From Octopus bimaculoides (lineage: Eukaryota), in the NCBI RefSeq assembly GCF_001194135.2, contig NC_068986.1, forward strand, positions 44,918,132 to 44,972,664: a stretch of DNA of 54,533 nt. The letters are read 5' to 3'. The translations under genes and the position numbers were made by a program. Below are positions 6,278-54,189 of this stretch, in pieces (position 1 is the first letter of the stretch; the number at the start of each line of letters is the position of its first letter). The notes beneath the pieces are model-generated. The model worked only from the letters and a program-made list of their open reading frames with translations. It was not told the DNA's origin and ran no database searches.

Positions 6278-6875
6278 TATACTTGTTTCAGTCATTAGAC
6301 TGTGGCCATGCAGTGGCACTGACTTGAGAAATTTTAGTTGAACAAATTGACCAGTATTTATGTTTTTTAAAGCCTAGTATTTATTCTATCATTTGCTTTT
6401 GCCGAACCACTAAGTTATAGGGATGTAAAGAAACTAACACTGGTTATCAAGTGATAGTGTGGGGACAAACACAGTCACACACATACCACATATGCACAGA
6501 TACACACACACACGTATGTATGTATGTTATAATTAAAGTTTAGATTTGAAATTTAAAATTTTAAATTTAGCATTCAAACTATATTTTGGGTATGTCTCTA
6601 ATAGTGTACTCACAGAGTACATTCACCTGACATCATCCACAGTAAATGCATAGCATACTCTGTCTTTCATATCAATTATTTAGAATACACACACACACAC
6701 ACAACAACAACAGTCTTCTTTCAGTTTCCATCTACCAAATTCACTCACAAGGCATTGGACAGCTCAAGGCTATAGTAGAAGACACTTGCCCAAGGTGCTA
6801 CACAGTAGGACTGAACCCAGAACCACATGGCTGGGAAGCAAAACTTCTTACCACACATTCATGCCTGTTGATATA
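6278..6875 (-). mobile_element. Composite SINE, family B/C (tRNA-like head, CORE-like accttgggcaagt segment, internal CA microsatellite, tail ending tgactgaaacaagta)
   Basis: Head at 6715-6875 and tail at 6278-6475 recur at 15012-15420, 17787-18165, 30105-30450 and 31545-31885. Confidence 0.75.
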
Positions 6876-10566: not shown

Positions 10567-11481
10567 NNNNNNNNNNNNNNNNNNNNNNNNNNNNNNNNNN
10601 NNNNNNNNNNNNNNNNNNNNNNNNNNNNNNNNNNNNNNNNNNNNNNNNNNNNNNNNNNNNNNNNNNNNNNNNNNNNNNNNNNNNNNNNNNNNNNNNNNNN
10701 NNNNNNNNNNNNNNNNNNNNNNNNNNNNNNNNNNNNNNNNNNNNNNNNNNNNNNNNNNNNNNNNNNNNNNNNNNNNNNNNNNNNNNNNNNNNNNNNNNNN
10801 NNNNNNNNNNNNNNNNNNNNNNNNNNNNNNNNNNNNNNNNNNNNNNNNNNNNNNNNNNNNNNNNNNNNNNNNNNNNNNNNNNNNNNNNNNNNNNNNNNNN
10901 NNNNNNNNNNNNNNNNNNNNNNNNNNNNNNNNNNNNNNNNNNNNNNNNNNNNNNNNNNNNNNNNNNNNNNNNNNNNNNNNNNNNNNNNNNNNNNNNNNNN
11001 NNNNNNNNNNNNNNNNNNNNNNNNNNNNNNNNNNNNNNNNNNNNNNNNNNNNNNNNNNNNNNNNNNNNNNNNNNNNNNNNNNNNNNNNNNNNNNNNNNNN
11101 NNNNNNNNNNNNNNNNNNNNNNNNNNNNNNNNNNNNNNNNNNNNNNNNNNNNNNNNNNNNNNNNNNNNNNNNNNNNNNNNNNNNNNNNNNNNNNNNNNNN
11201 NNNNNNNNNNNNNNNNNNNNNNNNNNNNNNNNNNNNNNNNNNNNNNNNNNNNNNNNNNNNNNNNNNNNNNNNNNNNNNNNNNNNNNNNNNNNNNNNNNNN
11301 NNNNNNNNNNNNNNNNNNNNNNNNNNNNNNNNNNNNNNNNNNNNNNNNNNNNNNNNNNNNNNNNNNNNNNNNNNNNNNNNNNNNNNNNNNNNNNNNNNNN
11401 NNNNNNNNNNNNNNNNNNNNNNNNNNNNNNNNNNNNNNNNNNNNNNNNNNNNNNNNNNNNNNNNNNNNNNNNNNNNNNNNN
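10567..11481. other. Assembly gap flanked by (CT)n and (TA)n microsatellites
   Basis: Run of N. Confidence 1.
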
Positions 11482-15011: not shown

Positions 15012-15420
15012 ATCTTATCTTTTACATGTTTCGGTTATCGGACAGCAGCGACGTTGGGGCACCGCCTTGAATGGTTCAGTCGCTTAAATCGACTCCATTC
15101 TATAGTTTTAAGCTTAGTACTTATTCCACCAGACTCTTTTGACGAGCCGCTAAGTTACGGGGATATAAACAAACCAACTCAGGTTGTCAAGGGGTGGTGG
15201 AGCATAAACACAAACGCAAAGATAAACATACACATAAATAAATACATATAGATATACATACGACGAGTTTTTTTTTTTTTTCAGTTTCCGCCATTAAATC
15301 CATTTACAAAGCTGTGGTCAGCCCAGGGCTATAGTAGAAGACACTTGCCAAAGGTGTCATGCAGTGGGACTGAACTCAGAACAGTGCGATTGGAAAACAA
15401 ATGTACTACCACGCAGCCAC
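15012..15420 (-). mobile_element. Composite SINE family B/C, CpG-retaining copy
   Basis: Contains gccgctaagttacgggga (15146-15163) and ggctatagtagaagacacttgcc. Confidence 0.75.
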
Positions 15421-16485
15421 ACCAGCGCGTAGCACACGTCTTACCACACGGCCAAATCTAATACTACACATACACACACACATACATACACATCCTTTTA
15501 TCTTTCTACTTGTTTCAGTCATTAGACTGCGGCCATGTTGGGGCACTGACTTGAAGAATCCAAAGCTGGGTGAGAAGAAAGCAGAAGGTGCACAGGTAGT
15601 GTCTCTTACAGCTGTTTCAAGAATAGAAGCGCAGATGGTGCATTTCCCTGCAAGCAGTTGGCAGCCAAAATTATGCAATCTATTCTATCGTCGGAGTAGA
15701 TTGCCACAATGACATACCGAGACACTTATGCCGTAAGTGTCTAGAGAAGCTTTTATCGTTAGAGATATGACTGCATGCTAGCCAGATAACTATTTCTTCG
15801 TGTTGTAAGAGGTGGGAAAACTCATTATTTATTGTAGACAAATGATTTCTATTAACCCAGCGTCGTGCAACGACCAAGAAACCTGTCTTCTGAAAGACTT
15901 CTGTTGTCCCTGACTCTGTCTCTCTAGCGCGCATCTCAATTTATAGCCATGTTTTGGCAGGAAATTCATGGAAAATTCCATCGATTGTATGATAACCGCT
16001 GAAATACTATTTGGTCAGAATTCGGGGCAAATCACCTGATAGTGGCCTATTTCTCGTTATTGTACTAATGCAATTTCAAATCGAAGTCCTGCTACAACAT
16101 AAAACCAGTAATGTGGACCTACAGCATAACTGCTCTGGGAGAATAGTGACATATACCATAACCATTATGAATATTCCTCAACTAATTTTTTATCAACCTC
16201 TTGTGATCTAAACTCCTGTATTATTTAATTCCACCGTCATGTTTAAATATGTCATAATTTAACTTACTACCGGTTGTTTGCTTGTTGATACCTTTATTCT
16301 ATCGCACATACACACACATACATAACAGAAAAAGAGACGACACTGGAAAAAACAAAGGTTATGTATTGTTTTTTTCCGGTATCATCTCTTTGTTTTTATT
16401 ACCTCTTTATACTCCTCTAACATTGAGTTCTGAAACATGCGTATATTGAGTTTTACACCAGGTTATTAGTCTTGCTATGCCTAAA

Positions 16486-17786: not shown

Positions 17787-18165
17787 TCATGGCTGTGTAG
17801 TGAGAACTTTGCTTCTCAACCACATAGTTTTGGGTTCTATCTATCTATCTATCTAGAGACAGACAGACAGAGACAGAGAGAGCGGTATTAATTAACCTAG
17901 CTGTTACTTAATATCCGGTTTTAATACCTCGTGCAAAACTGATTGCTAAGATCGATTAATATGATTAGTTTGTGTGTGCGTATGTTTATGTCCTTATCCC
18001 CAATCCTAGACAACCGGTGTTGGTTTGTTTATGTCCTCGTAAACTAGCGGTTCGGTAACAGACACCGATAAAATAAGTACCAGGGACGATTTTTTTTCAA
18101 TTAAACCCTTCAAAGTGGTGCACCAGAATGGTCGCAGGCCAATGACTGAAACAAGTAAAAGATAA
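17787..18165 (+). mobile_element. Composite SINE family B/C (partial head and tail)
   Basis: Head tggctgtgtagtgagaactttgcttctcaaccacat; tail aatgactgaaacaagtaaaaga. Confidence 0.65.
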
Positions 18166-18221
18166 ATGATTGCAATGTATACACTACTTTTTATAAAATA
18201 CACACAACTCTAGCATACGGG

Positions 18222-18500
18222 GGTACTACTAAAGCAGTGCGGACCCGAACGCGCAGTCGCGCGTCCGCGCTAGCTAGTCGTGAGTGGTCTATCCTAACCC
18301 TAAACACGTATTCATTTGCACACGCGGGTTAGGGATAGGGTTAGGGTTAGCGATAGGGTTAGGGTTAGGGACAGGGTTAGGGCTAGGGTTAGGGTTAGCG
18401 ATAGGGTTAGGGTTAGGGTTAGGGTTAGGATCGACCACTCAAGACTAGCTAGCGCGGACGCGCGACTGCGCGTTCGGGTCCGCGCTGCTTTAGTAGTACC
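18222..18500. mobile_element. 279-bp MITE with 82-bp TIRs, a 9-bp TSD and an internal telomeric-type array (Mutator-like by TSD length)
   Basis: TSD gcatacggg at 18213-18221 and 18501-18509; TIRs 18222-18303 and 18419-18500 differ at 3 of 82 positions; termini GG..CC. Confidence 0.9.
18329..18430 (+). repeat. Interstitial telomere-like array of 17 hexamers (9 perfect TTAGGG)
   Basis: Variants ATAGGG, TTAGCG, ACAGGG, CTAGGG and TTAGGA, read directly. Confidence 0.95.
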
Positions 18501-19644
18501 GCATACGGGATCGAAAGAAATTAACTGTAGTTTTATATGGACTCTCAACCACTCTACAACTGCTAGAAGTCAGATTTTCAGTAACCATTCTAGGAAGCCA
18601 CATAAAACACCTTTAGATAGACTGGGTATCTAGTTACCTATTGTTTTTACATTGCGCGCGCGAGTATGTATGTCATTATTCAGTTTATTTCAAGATTTCT
18701 TGCCAATAAAAAACCGGTTTCTAACCTAGATCCAAAGTTCCTTCATGTATGTATGCATGTAATATATACCCCTCATAACAGTCATGTTCTTGTATCAGGA
18801 CCGACTCACTCTCTTTATTCCTAGAAAATATTCTGAGGAAAGCAATTTGCAGGATCGATAATTCCGTACTCACTGACAACTTTCTGATTTTAGTCACCAC
18901 CTTCTGTCTTCCGGAGCCTCTCTGTGGCCGCACGGCCTGCTAGAAATAGCAACCAAATCTCCCTAAAGCAACTCCCTACCGTCTTAAAAAATAGACATAG
19001 GATAGTCTGAATAGAAACACGTAATGATCACTTTTAGAATGTCTTTCATCGTAAGTTTTCTTCACCAAAGCTGACTTACGATTAAACAACTGCCAAAACT
19101 CTTCCGAATCTGCAGGTTATCCGCATTCCTCAAATGTAGTTTGTACAAACCGTCCACTTTTCGTTGCGCACATTGTGTCTGTTTCTAATTTCCGCAACAA
19201 ATATATCGCACAATCCTTCAGTCCGAAGTCCAACTTCTATCCTGTTCGAATATATCCTCGCCAAACAGCAATCTCTCCTCTCTTTGTAAAGTACAAACGT
19301 ATTAACGACAATGCAAATGTCATTTTAATACTGAGAAGCATCAGCAAGACTATGAATCATTACTTCTCTCGTTCGACTTGCGGTTGAGAAACACTAAAAA
19401 GTTACACGGGATTTCAACAACAAAATTACATACTATGAAGCAGTTATTATTTTCCCAAGGATAGTTAGTTATTGTTGTTGCAGTCGTTTACCTACGGGTC
19501 AGCTCTAGTCGAGGAGAACTCTGATCAAAGTCTTTCCAGCCACGACCATTCGTCTTTTTTCCTAAATGCAGGGAACGCAGTACCACGTCATACAATGTTT
19601 ATCGTTCTAAGATGTTCAGATGTAAGTTGGTGCAAGTTTAGTTA

Positions 19645-30521: not shown

Positions 30522-30650
30522 CTTTTATCTTTTACTTGTTTTGGTCAGCCCAGGGCTATAGTTGAAGATACTTGCCCAAGGTATCACACAGTGGGACTAA
30601 ACCCAGAGTCATGTGGTTGAGAAACAAACTTCTTAACACAGCCACACCTG
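30522..30650 (-). mobile_element. Internally deleted family B/C SINE, inverted relative to 30105-30450
   Basis: The tail end tcttttacttgtt is fused directly to ttggtcagcccagggctatag from the head. Confidence 0.7.
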
Positions 30651-30672
30651 TGCATATATATATGTATATATA

Positions 30673-30727
<55 letters not shown>

Positions 30728-30918
30728 NNNNNNNNNNNNNNNNNNNNNNNNNNNNNNNNNNNNNNNNNNNNNNNNNNNNNNNNNNNNNNNNNNNNNNNNN
30801 NNNNNNNNNNNNNNNNNNNNNNNNNNNNNNNNNNNNNNNNNNNNNNNNNNNNNNNNNNNNNNNNNNNNNNNNNNNNNNNNNNNNNNNNNNNNNNNNNNNN
30901 NNNNNNNNNNNNNNNNNN
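30728..30918. other. Assembly gap within (TA)n
   Basis: Run of N. Confidence 1.
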
Positions 30919-32449: not shown

Positions 32450-32549
32450 NNNNNNNNNNNNNNNNNNNNNNNNNNNNNNNNNNNNNNNNNNNNNNNNNNN
32501 NNNNNNNNNNNNNNNNNNNNNNNNNNNNNNNNNNNNNNNNNNNNNNNNN
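32450..32549. other. 100-N gap, probably unsized
   Basis: Run of N. Confidence 1.
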
Positions 32550-32599
32550 ACTTTCATAACCTGATCTAACAGCTTGATGCCTCTGTAATTATTTGTGTT

Positions 32600-33123
32600 T
32601 CAAGCGTCACCTTTACCTTTGTAGCAGTTGACTATGATGCTGCACCAGTCATTGTGTATGACTCCATCGTGTATCACCTGGTTCGTAATACGGGTGACTA
32701 GGCTATAGCCAACACTGCCAGATATTTTGAGCATCTCTGCAGTGATTCCTGATGGGCCGGGGGCTTTCCCGGTCTTCATACTCTTAATTGCTTTATCTAC
32801 CCTGGTACTATCAACTCGGATAGCTGGTCCCTCTATTGGGTCGACATACGGCAGGCTCTCTTTCTCCCATTCATTCTCTTTATTAAGCAATCTATCGTAG
32901 TGGCATCTCCAGACCTCTTTCTTTGCATCCTCATTTAATGCAAGCGTACCATCATCCATGCGAACACATTTCTCTCCTACAACATCACTATTCTCTCTCC
33001 TACACTGTCTTGCAACACGAAATACCTCGAGTCTTTGGTCCTCACGGCGCAGAACATTGGCAAATCTTTCCTTATCTGCTTCCCCTCTGGCTAAATAAAC
33101 CTGTCGCCTAGCCTCCCTTCTGG
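32600..33123 (-). mobile_element. RTE-like LINE ORF2 fragment (linker and start of RT), relatively young
   Basis: Open frame ARREARRQVYLARGE..KKEVWRCHYDRLLN..MKTGKAPGPSGITAEMLK..DWCSIIVNCYKGKGD; CpGs retained. Confidence 0.92.
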
Positions 33124-36435: not shown

Positions 36436-36655
36436 TAAGGCAGCAAGCTGGCAGGATTGGTAGCATGCCAGGCAAAATGCTTAGTGGCATTTTATCTGTC
36501 TTTACGTTTTGAGTTCAAATTCTGCCTAGGTCAACTTTGCCTTTCAACCTTCCAGGGTCATTAGAATAAGTACCATTTGAGCACTGGGGGTTGATGTACC
36601 CCCCCCCCCACCGCAAAAAAAAAATTTGCTGGCCTTGTGCCAAAATTTGAAACTA
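36436..36655 (+). mobile_element. Family A SINE
   Basis: aaggcagcaagctggcaggattggtagc..gagttcaaattctgcc..ggccttgtgccaaaatttgaaac. Confidence 0.85.
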
Positions 36656-39958: not shown

Positions 39959-40925
39959 CAGTGACCCACAAAAGTTTATAATACACAGTCAGAAATCCAG
40001 GTTTATATATATTGAGTTAATGCAGGTTAATGAAATTTCCACCATTTATTATGTTTTTTGTAATAAATTCAATACAACAATCAGAATTACAAAATAACAA
40101 ATCGAAAAAATTTTATATGGACAAAAGTTGAAATTCAAAGTACAAAAACTTTACTACACATTTAACTCAATTGAACAATTTTCCAGATATTTTGAATAAA
40201 AATGATTTGTTTTTTCTAGGATATCTACAGTGTTCTAAGAGATTCAGGAAGTTTCATATGTGAGCATTTACAGTCATTACATCAGTTCTGACAATATCAG
40301 TGAGTGAACATCATCATCTTGAGTAAAAATAAACAAATTAGTCAAGACCTTTTGTGAGCATATTGTTGACCTTCATAAGAGTGGCAATGGGTACATAAAG
40401 ATCTCTGCACAGCTTAATGTACCTTTGAGTTCAGTTCATATGATATGTAACTGGAAATCTTGCAATTCCATTCTCCCTCTAGTCTGCTTAGGTTGCCCAC
40501 ATAAGTTAGTAGAGTGTACAGCAAGAAAACTTGCAAGAACAGCTAATAATAGGCCACAGACTATGTTTAGACCTGGAAGCATGTGAAGTACATGTGAGCA
40601 AGGATAAAATTAGTAGATTACTTTGCTGTTATGATCTCTTTTCTCATTGTCTAAAAAAGATCCTCATTGCTTAAGAAATGTCATGTTAAAGCTTGTTTGG
40701 CCTTTGCAAAAAACATCTAAATGAACCAGCAACACATTGGGAAAACATAGTTTGGTCTGACAAAACTGAGATTGAGCTTTTCAGCAGAAATTCAATCAAC
40801 AAGGTTTGGAGAAAGAATGGCATGGAGTATGTGCCAAAGAATACTATCCCTACACTCAAAGATGGAGGCGGATCAGTTATGATGTGGGTTTGTTTTTGCT
40901 CATCAGGTGTTGGAAGACTATATTT
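39959..40925 (+). mobile_element. 3'-truncated decayed Tc1-family (DD34E-type) element
   Basis: TA|CAGTG left end; KQISQDL..IVDLHKSGNGYIKISAQLNVP, KKHL..WENIVWSDKTEIELF, IPTLKDGGGSVMMWVCF..GVGRL. Confidence 0.88.
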
Positions 40926-41169
40926 GTGTATGTGTATATAACTGCAATGTATGTGATAAGCTTCCTAAAGTTAGTATTTGAAATACCTTGTTGATTTGCA
41001 AAACTAACTTTAGGAAACGTACCAGCCACCTATTCACCTATCAATCTGGTGGGCACACAAACAACATTCTTACTCGGAAATGGGATAGGTAGGTGCTTGT
41101 GAATGCAAAGTCCTTTCCAAGCAAAGAATGTAGTATACAACATAGTTTAGCAGTTAGTAGCTTCAGACT

Positions 41170-42528: not shown

Positions 42529-42906
42529 TTGTTTGTTGGCACTCTGTCGCTTACGACGTCGAGGGTTCCAGTCGATCTGATCAACGGAACAGCCTGTTCG
42601 TGAAATTAACGTGCAAGTGGCTGAGCACTCCACAGACACGAGTACCCTTAAAGTACTTCTCGGGGATATTCAGTGTGACAAGGCTGACCCTTTGAATTAC
42701 AGGCACAACAGAAACAGGAAGTAAGAGTGAGAGAAAGTTGTGGAGGAAGAGTACAGCAAGGTTCGCCACCATCTCCTGTCGGAGCCTTGTGGAGCTTTAG
42801 GTGTTTTCGCTCAATAAACACTCACAACACCCGGTCTGGGAATCGAAACCGCGATCCTATGACTGCGAGTCCACTGCCCTAACCACTGGGCCATTGCGCC
42901 TCCACT
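42529..42906 (-). mobile_element. Full-length young tRNA-derived SINE with a 12-bp TSD
   Basis: TSD atctgataatgt at 42517-42528 and 42907-42918; A box TGGCCCAGTGG and B box GGTTTCGATTCC on the minus strand; (AAAC)n tail. Confidence 0.92.
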
Positions 42907-43766
42907 ATCTGATAATGTACTTCTACATCAAATACACTAAAGTGACTATATAATCCTGGAAATCACCTGCCAGCTGAGAGCTTCAATGCAGATCCATCTA
43001 ACCATGGCACTGTTGTTTAAAACTAGACAGTTTAAGTCTTTAACATTTAGTTTTTACTATCAAAGAATAAAAGTACTACAGATATAAACATAACTTTGGT
43101 TCATCAGGATAGGAAGTATTATGTTTGGTAAATAACAGTTGGTTTTTAAATGGCAATATTAAAGTCTTGTTTAGTAACACAAATACTTGTTTTACTATGT
43201 TGTGTTATCTCATTTGAAAGATTAAACATTTTTTATTCAGTAATGTTCTTGTCTTTTTTTTCCAGTGTTTAACTCTGCATGTTGAAAATCCTCAAACTTA
43301 CTGACAACATAAAACAAGTTTATTGCATCATTTTACTGCATAGTTTCAACTGAGCCACAATTCCTTACAAACTTTGTAGGAAATGGACCAAATATGATGT
43401 GAAGAGACTATTTCTGAGCATACAGGATGCATTGGTTTCAAGAATTCCCAATGAAAATTTGCATTTCATAGATTAAGAGAGGAGAGATTAGCATCAGCTA
43501 TAGCAAGTGACAAACTGAAGCTATTAGTTGAAGAGAAGCCAGACTTAATTTTCTAAGAAACAACTTTTAGGAGTAGTATTTTGCCAGTTCACATCATCTG
43601 TAATAAAGGGGAAAAGAGAAGCTTGTCCAATGAATTGTACAAGGACTTCACATTTAAAACTGTCACTGTACATACCGGCTTGATATATCACCTATCATAT
43701 TCCTTAGCATTTACAGTAACTGAACAGCTGTACTGATAAATTTCAATCTATCCAGAAAATTTGTTT

Positions 43767-45520
43767 GGCTGTAGGAGAGTTCGCCACAGGAAATTTTGCC
43801 GCAAAACAATTTCACCGAAAAAATGATGAATTGCTCCCTTGGTACATAATTGTTTCAACCAACCTAACTTTTATTAGAGAAACCAATAGGAAGGGGTAAA
43901 GTTATTGCATAACATTTAAAATTTCTTTATTCATTTGACAATATTTTTTTGTGTAGCCAACCCATTACAATAGTCTATTAAGTGGGAACTAGCAGAGGCA
44001 GTTTGAAATTAGTTGATGATCTTAACTTTGTTTATAGGATAGATAGAAAATACGGTGAAAAATCATATTGGAAATGTGAAAATAGAGAATGTAAAGCAAG
44101 AGTGCATCCCATGCTGGAGAACAATAATTTATCTATACGTAAAACATTCAGCAAGCATTGCTGTCCTTCTCAGCCTTCAAAGCTGAAAGTTTACATAGTG
44201 AAAATGAAATTGAAATCACTAGCCACTAATTCACAAACTTCTGCATGGTCATTAATTGCAGAAATTTCATCTAGTTTAGATGATAATGCATGGTCACTGA
44301 TGCTGATGCCATCGCATTTGTCTCGCAATATCAGAGGTTGGAGGCAAAAGAAAAGCCAAGCTCACCCAATCCCAACTGGAAGAAGTGGGTGTATAATACC
44401 TGAAGAATATAGATTTCTTGAAAATGGTGAGAAGTTTTTATTATACTATATTGGTGAAGATAATCCAGAGAGACTGTTAGTATTTGGCACACAAGTTGGG
44501 TTAGATGACCTTGAGAATAATAAGGATTGGCCTTGTGATGGAACTTTTAAATGCAGCCCAGATATCTATTATCAGTTGTTCACGTTACATATTGTCATAT
44601 GAAATATTAACATACCACGTCTTTTTGTTTTGCTACAACATACAGAAGGCTTAGCGCTTTGAAGGACTTACACCCATCATTAGAGCCTGAAATCTTAATG
44701 GTTGATTTCGAGAAAGCAATTATCAATACCTTTTGTGATATATTTCCAACAGGTTGTTTATTTCATATGGCTAAGAATATCTATCACGACATTGTGAATA
44801 TAAGTATAAAACCTTGTTATCAAACAGATGCAGAATTTAACAATGCTTCACTGCATTAGCATTTCTTCTAGTGCGTGATATTATTGATGGTTTTCTTGAA
44901 CTGATGATGATGATTTGCTTCAAGAATTTGTATCATACTTTGAAACTCATTATATAGGAAGAGAATGAGGTTGAGGTGAGCAAAGACGAAGAATGCAACC
45001 AGCTTTTCCTATCTAAGTGTGTGTGGAATGTCTTCGAAAGAACCCAGAATAATACGATGAGAACAAACAACAGCGTAGAAGGCTTCCACATTGCAATGCA
45101 AAGCTCCATTACTAACATGCACCCAAATTTGTGGAAACTTGTTACATATTTGAAAAAGGAAGAGACATTACTGAAAAAGAAAAAGTGTCATTTAGATTGA
45201 GCAAATGCAGTCCTAATAAAGAAAATATATATTGATATCAATGAAAGAATTTAGTGGAAAACACTTCATTATAAATATGAAAATGCTTCAATATAAACGT
45301 TTACAAAGAACAAAAAGAAAACAAAAAAACAGTTACATCTAAAACAGAATTATAAAAATCATTTATATATAAAGCAATTTTTTTCAGAGCTGCAATTTCT
45401 CTAAATCAGGTTGCCTGCCATATCTTCGAAATTACCTATATGACAAAGTTTCCTATGATGATAATTCCTGAGGTGAGTTTTCTTGCGGTAAAAATGTTTA
45501 TAGCGAATATTCCAAGAACC
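43767..45520 (+). mobile_element. Decayed Mutator-like (MULE/Phantom-type) DNA transposon
   Basis: Degenerate TIRs ggctgtaggagagttcgcca and (reverse complement) ggttcttggaatattcgcta; internal transposase pseudogene; no clean TSD. Confidence 0.8.
43982..45200 (+). pseudogene. FLYWCH plus MULE DDE transposase pseudogene
   Basis: YWKCENRECKARVH (FLYWCH-like), CDGTFKCSPDIYYQLFTLH, MVDFEKA, GCLFH, RTNNSVEGFH; split over three ORFs by stops and frameshifts. Confidence 0.9.
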
Positions 45521-45787
45521 AAATTTCAAGGATATTAAAGAAGTCTAGGACTCTGGTTATTTTTGGGTAGTCACAGATAATTGTGTTCTTCATTGGTAAA
45601 AGTGATTGATGTTTCTTGTACTTGAATTTATTGATTAATAAAGTTGAACTGACTAATCTGATTTATTTTCTAAAAACCAAGAGTTCTTTAAATTTCTTCC
45701 ATACCGACCAAACTCTTTCAGGAACAGCATCAGAGCTATTGCTGCTAGTAACAGTAAACCACTTAAAAGGTTTCTCTGCTTACAACC

Positions 45788-47250: not shown

Positions 47251-48724
47251 TCTATATATATAAAAATGAAAATGTATGTCTGTCTGTCTGTGTGAATCCC
47301 TAAAACTCGAGAACTACGCAACCAATTTCATTCAAATTTTACACATGCCTTACTTAGGGTTCCAGTTGTGTTTTAGTCAAAAAAATTTATTAACTTCTTG
47401 CAGAGTTCGAGCACACGGCAACATAATATCTCCTCCACTATTTAAGTATTACGTGTCAAAAGTGAAACAAAAACACTCATGTCAAATACTTTCACTTTAA
47501 AAATGAAACTATTCCACTAACTGAAACAATCACATTTCGATACTGTAGTGACAGATACTTTCACAGAGAGAGAAAGAGAGAGAGAGAGAGAGATGTATAT
47601 GTATACATATACATGTATATGTACACCATTTCGATACCGNNNNNNNNNNNNNNNNNNNNNNNNNNNNNNNNNNNNNNNNNNNNNNNNNNNNNNNNNNNNN
47701 NNNNNNNNNNNNNNNNNNNNNNNNNNNNNNNNNNNNNNNNNNNNNNNNNNNNNNNNNNNNNNNNNNNNNNNNNNNNNNNNNNNNNNNNNNNNNNNNNNNN
47801 NNNNNNNNNNNNNNNNNNNNNNNNNNNNNNNNNNNNNNNNNNNNNNNNNNNNNNNNNNNNNNNNNNNNNNNNNNNNNNNNNNNNNNNNNNNNNNNNNNNN
47901 NNNNNNNNNNNNNNNNNNNNNNNNNNNNNNNNNNNNNNNNNNNNNNNNNNNNNNNNNNNNNNNNNNNNNNNNNNNNNNNNNNNNNNNNNNNNNNNNNNNN
48001 NNNNNNNNNNNNNNNNNNNNNNNNNNNNNNNNNNNNNNNNNNNNNNNNNNNNNNNNNNNNNNNNNNNNNNNNNNNNNNNNNNNNNNNNNNNNNNNNNNNN
48101 NNNNNNNNNNNNNNNNNNNNNNNNNNNNNNNNNNNNNNNNNNNNNNNNNNNNNNNNNNNNNNNNNNNNNNNNNNNNNNNNNNNNNNNNNNNNNNNNNNNN
48201 NNNNNNNNNNNNNNNNNNNNNNNNNNNNNNNNNNNNNNNNNNNNNNNNNNNNNNNNNNNNNNNNNNNNNNNNNNNNNNNNNNNNNNNNNNNNNNNNNNNN
48301 NNNNNNNNNNNNNNNNNNNNNNNNNNNNNNNNNNNNNNNNNNNNNNNNNNNNNNNNNNNNNNNNNNNNNNNNNNNNNNNNNNNNNNNNNNNNNNNNNNNN
48401 NNNNNNNNNNNNNNNNNNNNNNNNNNNNNNNNNCAAGAGTGGGCAGCAACAAAAAACCTATTTGTATATGCTCCACAAGGGAAAACAAGGAACATAGTTT
48501 ACAATGAGGTGTTATAATCACAACAGCAAGAAAGTATGTACATGATCACCTTTTACGAAACTTCATTGACTTTCATATATTTATATTGATATACATATAT
48601 ATACGTGTGTTTGGGTGCGTGTGTGTATATACATCTCTATATATAAAGATGATGCGTAGTCTAGACGGCGTTTTTAGATTTCATTATTCTCTTTAACCCG
48701 GGCAACGCCGGGTGTTTCTGCTAG
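47251..48724 (+). mobile_element. Helitron (gap inside) with a RepHel C-terminal remnant
   Basis: A|TC 5' start at 47251; 3' hairpin cccgggcaacgccggg at 48697-48712, then CTAG|T; 48434-48517 reads RVGSN, then after a frameshift KNLFVYAPQGKTRNIVYNEVL*, resembling a Helitron PIF1-helicase end. Confidence 0.8.
47640..48433. other. Assembly gap
   Basis: Run of N. Confidence 1.
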
Positions 48725-50189: not shown

Positions 50190-51038
50190 TTAACCCTTTA
50201 GCATTAAAACCAGCCATATGTGGCTGAAATATCCTACCTGTTTTATGTTTAAACAGGCTGATCCAACTGCTCACAGCTATACTAAAATGTCAGTCTAAAA
50301 GCATATGCTCAGATTGTCAAAGTCTCTAAGCTGCAAGATAGTGTATGATTAATTGAAAATAATGTGAATAAATTATTATTCACGGTGAACTAGAGGATGT
50401 AGCCGAGTTTACGTATTTAGGTAGTAAGATAACATTCTCAGGCGGCACCGACGAAGATATTAAGACGACGCTTTCCACTTGTTAAAAAAAGTATGGAGCG
50501 CAAGTGTAATTTCAATAAAGAACAAAATAAGAATTTTTAACACTAACGTAAAAGCGGTGTTATTGTATGGGGCTGAGACATGGAGAACAACAGTTAAGTC
50601 AAATAAGCAAATACAATCATTCATCAACAGGTGCTTGTGTAGTATACTTAAAATCAGATGGCCCGAACACATAAGCAATATGGTGCTATGGCAAAGAACG
50701 AATCAAGTTCCGATTAGGGAGCAAATATTTAAGAAAAAGTGGAAGTGGGTTGGTAGCACAATTAGAAAGGACACACCAAATGCAGCGAAAAGTGCTTTAC
50801 AGTGGAATCCAGATGGATATAGAAAGGGGTAGGCCTAAGAACTCGTGGCGTAGATCAACACAAAAGGAACTAGAGAAAGGTACATTCATGGCAGAGTATA
50901 AGTACAGAAGCAAGAAATGCGACATGGAATTCAATTATAAGTGGCCTATACTCCATGTTGGAGGGTTAAAGGCAAGAAGAAGAATGTGAATAAATAAGCA
51001 TTACGTTTAACAGAGTAATCTGAATTCTAAAAGGTTAA
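50190..51038 (+). mobile_element. piggyBac-like MITE split by an RTE insertion
   Basis: TTAA-CCCTTTAGCATT at 50190 and AATTCTAAAAGG-TTAA at 51038; the two halves rejoin to match 9921-10125. Confidence 0.8.
50374..50982 (+). mobile_element. 5'-truncated RTE LINE with a 13-bp TSD
   Basis: TSD aatgtgaataaat at 50361-50373 and 50983-50995; FTYLGS, NVKAVLLYGAETW, KKWKWVG, LQWNPDGYRK; (AAG)n tail. Confidence 0.92.
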
Positions 51039-53088: not shown

Positions 53089-53700
53089 TTTGGGTCACCC
53101 CATAAATAATGTGGTTTTTTTCAATTGCATGAAATAAAAGTCAGAGGTGGAGAGAATGAAATACCTGCATCAACTTGCTATAAAAGCAGGTAGTAATTTT
53201 ACCTTGTCCTTATTGTTAGTGCAAGTTTTGAAGAGTGCAGTTCGATTTTAACAGTCATTTTTTTCAAAGTTATAATGAAAGTGACAAAGGAGCATATTCG
53301 GCATACTTTGCTTCATGAGTTCAATAAAGGCAACAACGCAACGGAAAGCGTGAGGAATATTAATGCAGTATATGGGGACTGGACAATAAGTGTAAACTAG
53401 TGTCAATGGTGGTTTCAGAAATTCCGAGGTGGAAACTACAACCTAGAAGATGAGTCTTGTCCTGGAAGATCTGTAGAGCTTGATGAGGATTTTCTGCAAA
53501 CCTTGGTGGAACAAAATCAAATCATAACTGCTGAGGAACTAGCAGAGAAGCTTGGATTTGGTAATTCAACCATTCATTGACACCTGCATGCCATGGAAAA
53601 AGTCAGCAAATTGGATCAATGGGTTCCTCACAAAGTTTCCGAGTCTAATTGCATGCAGAGAGTGAATGTATTCTCATCTTTGCTGTCACGTCTCACGAAA
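53089..53700 (+). mobile_element. 3'-truncated mariner (DD34D-type) element
   Basis: Left TIR ttgggtcaccccataaataatg; from 53275 MKVTKEHIRHTLLHEFNKGNNATE..WFQKFRGGNYNLEDE..GR..ELAEKL..KLDQWVPH with stops. Confidence 0.9.
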
Positions 53701-54189
53701 ATTAACCTTCCATCAACACTATCTAGATTTAAGTCTAAATTCTGCAATAGTGTAGGGTTCAAAGGCCCATGGCTTTCAATGTTCTGCCAAAGGATTTAAG
53801 AGACCTATGTGGTATGGATGTAGATGTCTTCAAAATGCAGCTAGAACTTCAACAGTCTAGAGTTCTAGAGTTCCAGATGAGTCTACTTTGCAGCAAGAAA
53901 CACAAATGAGGGCAGCATCTTCTAACTCCACTTTTAACTGAATACCAACTAACGGCGTGACACAGTATGATCACAGCTTACAGGCTGAAGTAAAAGAAAA
54001 GGGAAAAAAAAGTAGATACATCATGATGACAATGATGAACGCTATATTCCTCGTATATACATAATGATATATACATATATATATATATTTATATATCTAT
54101 GTATATATGTATGTATGTATGTATGTATAGATATGTATGTATATGTGTATTTATACATCCATATGTATATATATATAAAGTGTAGTATA

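Follow-up and report, generated by a model that had tools for sequence, protein, structure and literature searches.

A foldback-like miniature transposon with telomere-type hexamers in its inverted arms in Octopus bimaculoides

In a stretch of the Octopus bimaculoides genome of 54,533 nt (RefSeq assembly GCF_001194135.2, contig NC_068986.1, forward-strand positions 44,918,132 to 44,972,664; hereafter the window), we describe a 279-bp element that carries hexamers of the telomere repeat TTAGGG inside both of its inverted arms. The element is a genuine non-coding insertion of a cut-and-paste DNA transposon, a foldback-like MITE (miniature inverted-repeat transposable element). The explanation that we lean towards, although not strongly, is a single recent insertion of such a MITE, most likely one of the Mutator-like elements (MULEs), of foldback/Rehavkus-like type; the hexamers would be an integral part of its subterminal sequence. 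Its architecture and mechanism are already known from MITE/foldback-like elements of a superfamily with 9-bp duplications; the unusual feature lies in which sequence is repeated subterminally.

Structure, coding capacity and age of the element

The element spans positions 18222-18500 and lies between two exact copies of the 9-bp direct repeat GCATACGGG, a sequence that occurs in the whole window only at 18213-18221 and 18501-18509. Its parts, in window coordinates, are the following:

18213-18221, unstranded: left target-site duplication GCATACGGG; exact direct repeat (D4, spacing 288) that adjoins the arm and is not extendable
18222-18303, + strand: left inverted arm with a length of 82 nt; 96% complementary as inverted repeat I1, 79/82 positions in the arm-to-arm alignment
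Make-up of the left arm: 71-nt unique GC-rich part (18222-18292) that begins GGTACTACTAAAGCAG, then, at 18293-18303, the 11-nt stretch CCTAACCCTAA of the telomeric C-strand
18304-18325, unstranded: central spacer ACACGTATTCATTTGCACACGC, unique, 22 nt, by direct reading
18326-18429, + strand: imperfect (GGGTTA) array of ~17 units, with the G-strand on the + strand (Tandem Repeats Finder)
18419-18500, - strand: right inverted arm, 82 nt; inverted repeat I1, arm-to-arm alignment
Make-up of the right arm: 11 telomeric nt, TTAGGGTTAGG, then a 71-nt unique part with the end ...CTGCTTTAGTAGTACC
18501-18509, unstranded: right target-site duplication GCATACGGG; exact repeat of the left copy

The array overlaps the right arm, its final 11 nt (18419-18429) being the inner end of that arm. 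Both arms begin GGTACT... and both end internally in CCTAACCCTAA, and the centre that separates them measures 115 nt, composed of the 22-mer ACACGTATTCATTTGCACACGC and telomere-like hexamers. Since neither the arms, which are bordered by non-complementary bases (G at 18221 and G at 18501), nor the direct repeat can be extended, the duplication measures exactly 9 bp, and the element 279 bp. The initial annotation of this DNA had listed the exact 9-bp repeat, the 279-bp element, the 82-bp arms with three mismatches and their telomeric inner ends, all of which we confirmed by re-reading and with repeat finders. It had also called the centre almost entirely telomere-like; the hexamer array is there, with a share of ~80%, and 22 of the 115 nt are unique.

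Each arm also contains a small palindrome of its own, GCGGAC...GTCCGC, around a CG-rich core (18239-18268 and, as its mirror, 18454-18483; repeats I7 and D3), and a CTAGCTAG palindrome is likewise found in each arm. These arm-internal palindromes could be candidate protein-binding motifs.

At the base composition of the window, the chance of an exact 9/9 repeat adjoining both arm ends is ~8e-6. Folded as single-stranded DNA, the element forms one long hairpin of -106 kcal/mol, compared with -41 +/- 3 in shuffled sequences (z = -20). Its size (279 bp, where MITEs remain below ~800 bp) and its ends (terminal inverted repeats and a target-site duplication) are those of a MITE. The open reading frames (ORFs) within it are read-through of the repeats only, and a comparison of 5.8 billion proteins with a peptide made up of the arm's two open readings yielded 17 word-sharing candidates, none of which scored. 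Comparison with RNA families gave no match, and we therefore rejected an RNA gene. The structure and the open frames thus bear out the proposal that a transposon with long GC-rich arms and no coding capacity was inserted here, with a target-site duplication of 9 bp.

The element differs sharply from its surroundings in CpG content: the observed/expected ratio is 1.26 for the whole element and 1.54 and 1.62 for the unique parts of the left and right arms, versus 0.40 for the window. The three mismatches between the arms, at arm positions 17, 59 and 69, each fall within a CpG dinucleotide in one arm. Because the duplication is intact, the CpG depletion of the surroundings has been escaped and 3/3 arm mismatches lie in CpG, the insertion looks recent, or its family recently arrived, with decay only begun. 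The youth claimed for the element at the outset agrees with this.

The telomeric array and its proposed origin

According to PMC13218726, which cites Adachi 2014, TTAGGG is the only cephalopod telomere motif to have been determined experimentally, in the octopus Amphioctopus areolatus; the hexamer of the element is therefore the host's own telomere repeat, in agreement with the initial annotation, which had called TTAGGG the ancestral animal telomere repeat. Elsewhere in the window we found no TTAGGG dimers.

Tandem Repeats Finder describes the array at 18326-18429 by a period of 6, 17.3 copies, 83% matches and a score of 152. Twelve of 17 units are the canonical GGGTTA and five are variants (GGGATA, GCGATA twice, GGGACA and GGGCTA), and the longest perfect hexamer run comprises 4 units. 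The array also contains a higher-order duplication of 48 nt, or 8 units: positions 18326-18373 and 18374-18421 are 94% identical (family D1), and the motif GGGTTAGGGTTAGCGATA is found in both 48-mers. The 8-unit block was already degenerate when it was duplicated, as happens in the evolution of ordinary tandem repeats, and telomerase would write perfect units; the pattern argues for growth of the array by slippage or duplication, not by fresh telomerase synthesis. In its degenerate units and duplicated block, the array thus resembles the usual kind of subterminal tandem repeat. Interstitial telomeric sequences inserted by telomerase during break repair consist of near-perfect hexamers and come without inverted arms and without a target duplication. 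A tract of this kind was rejected here on three counts, namely the 83% match of the array, the 48-nt block duplication, and the enclosure by 82-nt arms and a 9-bp duplication.

The telomeric units are very unequally divided between the two sides, with 1.8 on the left and ~17 on the right. They begin 71 nt inside the element ends, and their polarity is C-strand on the left and G-strand on the right. In the arm alignment the two arms agree in the junction of unique and telomeric sequence, TC[T/G]ATCCTAACCCTAA, and the 11-nt match at the exact same register has a chance probability of ~4^-11. From this agreement it follows that the hexamers were already present in the inverted repeat of the inserting element; they are part of that repeat and result neither from a later local expansion nor from a capture confined to the middle.

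We propose that the parent of the element would have borne arrays of the host telomere hexamer in subterminal position on both sides, inverted with respect to each other, with the C-strand at left and the G-strand at right. A longer relative would provide the transposase in trans; this enzyme would bind the unique terminal sequence and excise the element, which would then integrate at a 9-bp staggered cut, with gap filling producing the target-site duplication. Internal deletion or array contraction may have left 1.8 units on one side, ~17 on the other and a 22-nt remnant, and the right array may later have been altered by slippage or unequal exchange, giving the 48-nt block, rather than by telomerase. 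The hexamers would serve as a stand-in for foldback-type subterminal repeats, either as extra low-affinity binding sites or as a merely tolerated, expandable microsatellite. The spacer ACACGTATTCATTTGCACACGC is probably filler DNA or what is left of the interior of the parent element.

Several observations weigh against this proposal. Within the window, the only sites that match the terminal 16-mer (<=3 mismatches) are both ends of the element itself. The arm sequences are also absent from four fetched loci (L001-L004), which were obtained via a FLYWCH-MULE protein search; one octopus protein was among the matches of that search, and this O. sinensis protein led to the 20.8-kb locus L003. Two arm patterns of 22-24 nt had zero matches in JGI metagenomes, IMG/VR and GTDB genomes, which says little, as these collections are essentially octopus-free. 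We were not able to find an autonomous partner: the window holds a single MULE, whose arms are not those of the MITE. The left array holds 1.8 units, so the symmetry of the subterminal arrays is deduced from the 11-nt match. Finally, the structural features of the element fit the Merlin superfamily equally well.

The MULE relic just mentioned (43747-45520) was considered as the autonomous partner and rejected, as it has no arm similarity to the MITE, and neither a PHD-finger nor a MULE transposase partner was found in the window or in the four loci. Comparison of the spacer with the window and with these loci likewise gave nothing significant. A crude scan of the whole window for further elements that combine terminal inverted repeats with a duplication gave none that was convincing. 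In the literature, including a search with the arm sequence as a text string, we found no description of a transposon with terminal inverted repeats that has TTAGGG in its arms, and a paper on the repeats of O. vulgaris (PMC13282606) does not mention telomeres. The left flank contains a repeat resembling short interspersed elements (SINE-like), the other copies of which stop ~20 bp short of the insertion point; because of this they are uninformative as a paralogous empty site.

Superfamily assignment and rival explanations

Target-site duplications measure 8 bp in hAT, 2 bp in Tc1/mariner, 4 bp in piggyBac, 3 bp in PIF, 2-3 bp in CACTA and 5 bp in Transib elements, and the 9-bp duplication therefore excludes all of these. 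For hAT in particular, an 8-bp duplication adjoining both arm ends is impossible with the boundaries observed, the 9 bp being exact.

The 9-bp duplication (MULE range 8-11) and the 82-nt inverted arms are both as expected of a MULE, a superfamily in which arm length varies from 18 to 640 bp across groups (PMC6446971, Table 1). Rehavkus/foldback elements have 9-bp duplications and long arms with subterminal tandem repeats in inverted orientation (PMC6446971; bioRxiv 10.1101/2024.12.02.626372), and the latter source, citing Liu and Wessler 2017, reports stronger transposase binding and excision with more subterminal repeats. In the octopus element the candidate counterparts of these repeats are the ~17 hexamers running into the right arm and, on the left, only 1.8 units, in the inverted orientation expected. 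It shares with foldback-type MULEs (Rehavkus, Drosophila FB/Tetris-like, Muta1-like) the 9-bp duplication, the small central loop of non-autonomous copies and a repeat number that varies between arms, and perhaps also arms that are unique at the tip and continue into inverted tandem repeats (PMC6446971; bioRxiv 10.1101/2024.12.02.626372). It differs from them in that their subterminal repeats are element-specific mini- or microsatellites, whereas here the repeat is the host telomere hexamer and the left array is almost gone.

The true MULE of the same window, an element with FLYWCH and MULE domains (FLYWCH+MULE, 'Phantom'-like; 43747-45520), also has a 9-bp duplication, AAATTTCAA, and its crustacean relatives have the 9-bp duplications GCTCTGGAC and GGTTTAGAC. 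As in the MITE, the arms of these elements contain short tandem repeats, but theirs are AT-rich repeats of ~13 nt of the GGAAAATTCGCC type and have no BLAST similarity to the MITE. One terminus of this family, GGTTCTAGGAAA, matches the MITE terminus GGTACTACTAAA at 9/12 positions, which, noticed post hoc, is no more than a lead. Recently active families in O. vulgaris number 21 for Mutator and 2 for Merlin (PMC13282606), and these numbers shift the prior toward a MULE. We estimate that a MULE-type origin is somewhat probable and a Merlin origin a lesser, though real, possibility, with the rest falling to other or unknown superfamilies. The initial assignment to Mutator/MULE therefore stands as the most likely one, while the 9-bp duplication and long arms on which it was based are not diagnostic, as they are shared by Merlin (PMC8101967), a candidate that the initial annotation had overlooked.

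It is indeed possible that the same non-autonomous cut-and-paste element, with the same mechanism, belongs to Merlin (with an IS1595-like DDE transposase) instead of MULE, and we hold this as a tentative alternative. Merlin elements have duplications of 8 or 9 bp, arms of 24-462 bp and a terminal 5'-GG that is conserved in all described families (PMC8101967). The octopus element agrees in all three respects, with its 9-bp duplication, 82-nt arms and 5'-GG start, and so resembles non-autonomous Merlin elements; some Merlin copies also contain internal tandem repeats (PMC8101967), and the superfamily was recently active in O. vulgaris, with the 2 families mentioned (PMC13282606). However, recently active Merlin families are ~10x fewer than those of Mutator in octopus (PMC13282606), and inverted subterminal tandem arrays, which are no defining feature of Merlin, are a hallmark of foldback/Rehavkus-type MULEs (PMC6446971; bioRxiv 10.1101/2024.12.02.626372). 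Moreover, the terminal 12 nt of the MITE resemble the MULE terminus from the same window, no Merlin transposase is evident in the window's ORF list (14 ORFs scanned against Pfam), and no DDE_Tnp_IS1595 partner was found.

A different question is whether the telomeric DNA belongs to the family at all or was a one-off, acquired when a MITE or deletion derivative picked up a piece of telomere by Pack-MULE-like capture or as gap-repair filler, with the 11-nt symmetry arising by hairpin-templated repair; the family would then neither carry nor spread the repeats. The strong asymmetry of the arrays (1.8 vs 17 units) would fit such an event, as would the 22-nt unique spacer, which resembles a deletion or filler junction, and the element was met in a single copy only. 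We nevertheless consider it unlikely, given the same unique/telomeric junction on both arms, with its 11-nt match, and given that a degenerate array with a duplicated 48-nt block is old relative to a fresh capture of perfect telomere.

If the hexamers are instead an integral part of the element, as we favour, they might also have a function. That they are a conserved, working part of the family's ends, bound by the transposase or by recruited telomere-binding proteins, and that many interstitial arrays of this origin are scattered through octopod genomes, we regard as doubtful. Still more doubtful in our judgement is a specific role of the arrays in telomere biology, through shelterin/TRF-like binding or telomerase healing, or as sites that the family's transposase binds specifically. 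Such a role is suggested by the identity of the repeat with the host telomere motif and by the polarity, C-strand left and G-strand right, which is that of real chromosome ends and of the Oxytricha telomere-bearing elements (PMC4724952); the polarity argument is weak, however, as only two symmetric orientations are possible. In foldback-type elements, transposase binding can be enhanced by subterminal repeats (bioRxiv 10.1101/2024.12.02.626372), and by this analogy it is plausible that a transposase might read the hexamers as binding sites, as the initial annotation had suggested, but any short tandem repeat could take that subterminal part. Lying 71 nt inside the ends, the arrays are unable to serve as termini, and with 5/17 units mutated the longest perfect run is 4 units. 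The variant units and the 48-nt higher-order duplication likewise leave the initial suggestions of shelterin/TRF binding and telomerase healing unsupported.

That the structure is no transposon we find hardly credible. It would then be vector sequence, an inverted duplication formed locally around an interstitial telomeric tract or an artefact of assembly, and the 9-mer a coincidence; the scaffold is indeed a draft, interrupted by four N gaps, and palindromic chimeras are known from some assemblies. However, an exact 9/9 repeat adjoins both arm ends (P ~8e-6), three arm mismatches do not fit a chimeric read copy, the nearest assembly gap is >6 kb away, and no plasmid or vector match was obtained, so that a vector or plasmid origin was rejected.

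Short, non-coding tandem-repeat MITE-like elements with a central tandem core of variable length are known in molluscs, namely pearl in oysters and DTC84 in Donax. These have been linked to Helitron-like elements, are not known to have long perfect inverted arms with 9-bp duplications, and their repeats are not known to be telomeric. Among ciliates, Tel-1 of Tetrahymena is a DNA transposon with the host telomere repeat in its inverted arms. It is the ciliate telomere-bearing elements (TBEs) that are the closest conceptual precedent for telomere repeats within transposon arms: TBE1-3 of Oxytricha, like the octopus element, have the host telomere repeat in inverted arms, with the C-strand at each arm's 5' end (PMC4724952). 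They differ in being Tc1/mariner elements of ciliate germlines that encode three proteins, make a 3-bp ANT duplication and carry the repeat at the outermost arm tip (PMC4724952). Membership of the MITE among them was rejected, its repeats being 71 nt inside the ends and its duplication 9 bp.

Other elements of the window and implications

The window has 35% GC, is rich in microsatellites, strongly depleted in CpG (0.40) and populated by decayed transposons of several classes. Its four assembly gaps (10567-11481, 30728-30918, 32450-32549 and 47640-48433) are all flanked by AT/TA-type microsatellites. When the window was compared with the fetched loci, the O. sinensis locus gave 29 repeat matches of 67-88% identity, while each of the three non-octopus loci gave 1-2, the MULE itself. 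SINE-like repeats shared with O. sinensis are present in many copies (e.g. 6707-6857, 15088-15431, 17968-18191, 30540-30727, 36437-36589 and 42713-42905), and one of them stops ~20 bp upstream of the point where the MITE is inserted.

The decayed FLYWCH+MULE is 1,774 bp long (43747-45520, + strand; 43738-45529 including its perfect 9-bp duplication AAATTTCAA), and several stops and frameshifts interrupt its reading frame. At the DNA level it is 81.6% identical to an O. sinensis copy and 75-76% identical to copies in Macrobrachium rosenbergii and in two ENA assemblies; the M. rosenbergii copy has an intact ORF of 467 aa. These relatives (Macrobrachium and the two ENA assemblies) bear the 9-bp duplications GCTCTGGAC and GGTTTAGAC and have ~200-bp arms of ~13-nt tandem repeats, and related proteins are known from Palaemon and sea lice as well. 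Because the distribution is patchy and the identity high, the comparison suggests horizontal transfer of this family between cephalopods and crustaceans.

Further relics include a Tc1-type transposase (40323-40938, + strand) with a Sleeping Beauty-type helix-turn-helix domain, after which a DDE-like ORF was recognised by eye, with no Pfam match, and a Mos1-type mariner (HTH_48; 53197-53796, + strand). Three fragments of long interspersed elements (LINEs) are present as well. The first (50464-50986, + strand) represents an RTE-type 3' end with DUF6451 and has its closest proteins in Schistosoma and gastropods; a protein search with a LINE reverse transcriptase returned flatworm and gastropod matches and no octopus protein. 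The second, an N-terminal reverse-transcriptase fragment (32550-32976, - strand), runs into the assembly gap at 32450-32549. In the third, at the start of the window, an ORF with a PHD finger (69-278 within 2-278, - strand) stands beside one resembling a reverse-transcriptase/retrotransposon tail, 18 kb from the MITE.

Interstitial telomeric sequences, which are known to be fragile and recombinogenic sites, are usually ascribed to chromosome fusion or to the action of telomerase where breaks are repaired. If true, a mobile element with telomere repeats in its inverted ends would be a third, self-copying route by which such sequences are seeded. Were the hexamers constant across a multi-copy family, this would become a documented transposon route by which interstitial telomeric sequences come to be dispersed in an animal. 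Should the family prove abundant in octopods, its interstitial telomeric tracts would form a countable and datable set, and the family would be a natural system in which to study whether a transposon's subterminal repeats can be swapped for a host motif; if the element is a single orphan copy, it would be a curiosity only. Either way, this is a clean and apparently recent insertion, and it hints at recent activity, in this lineage, of a transposase that makes 9-bp duplications.

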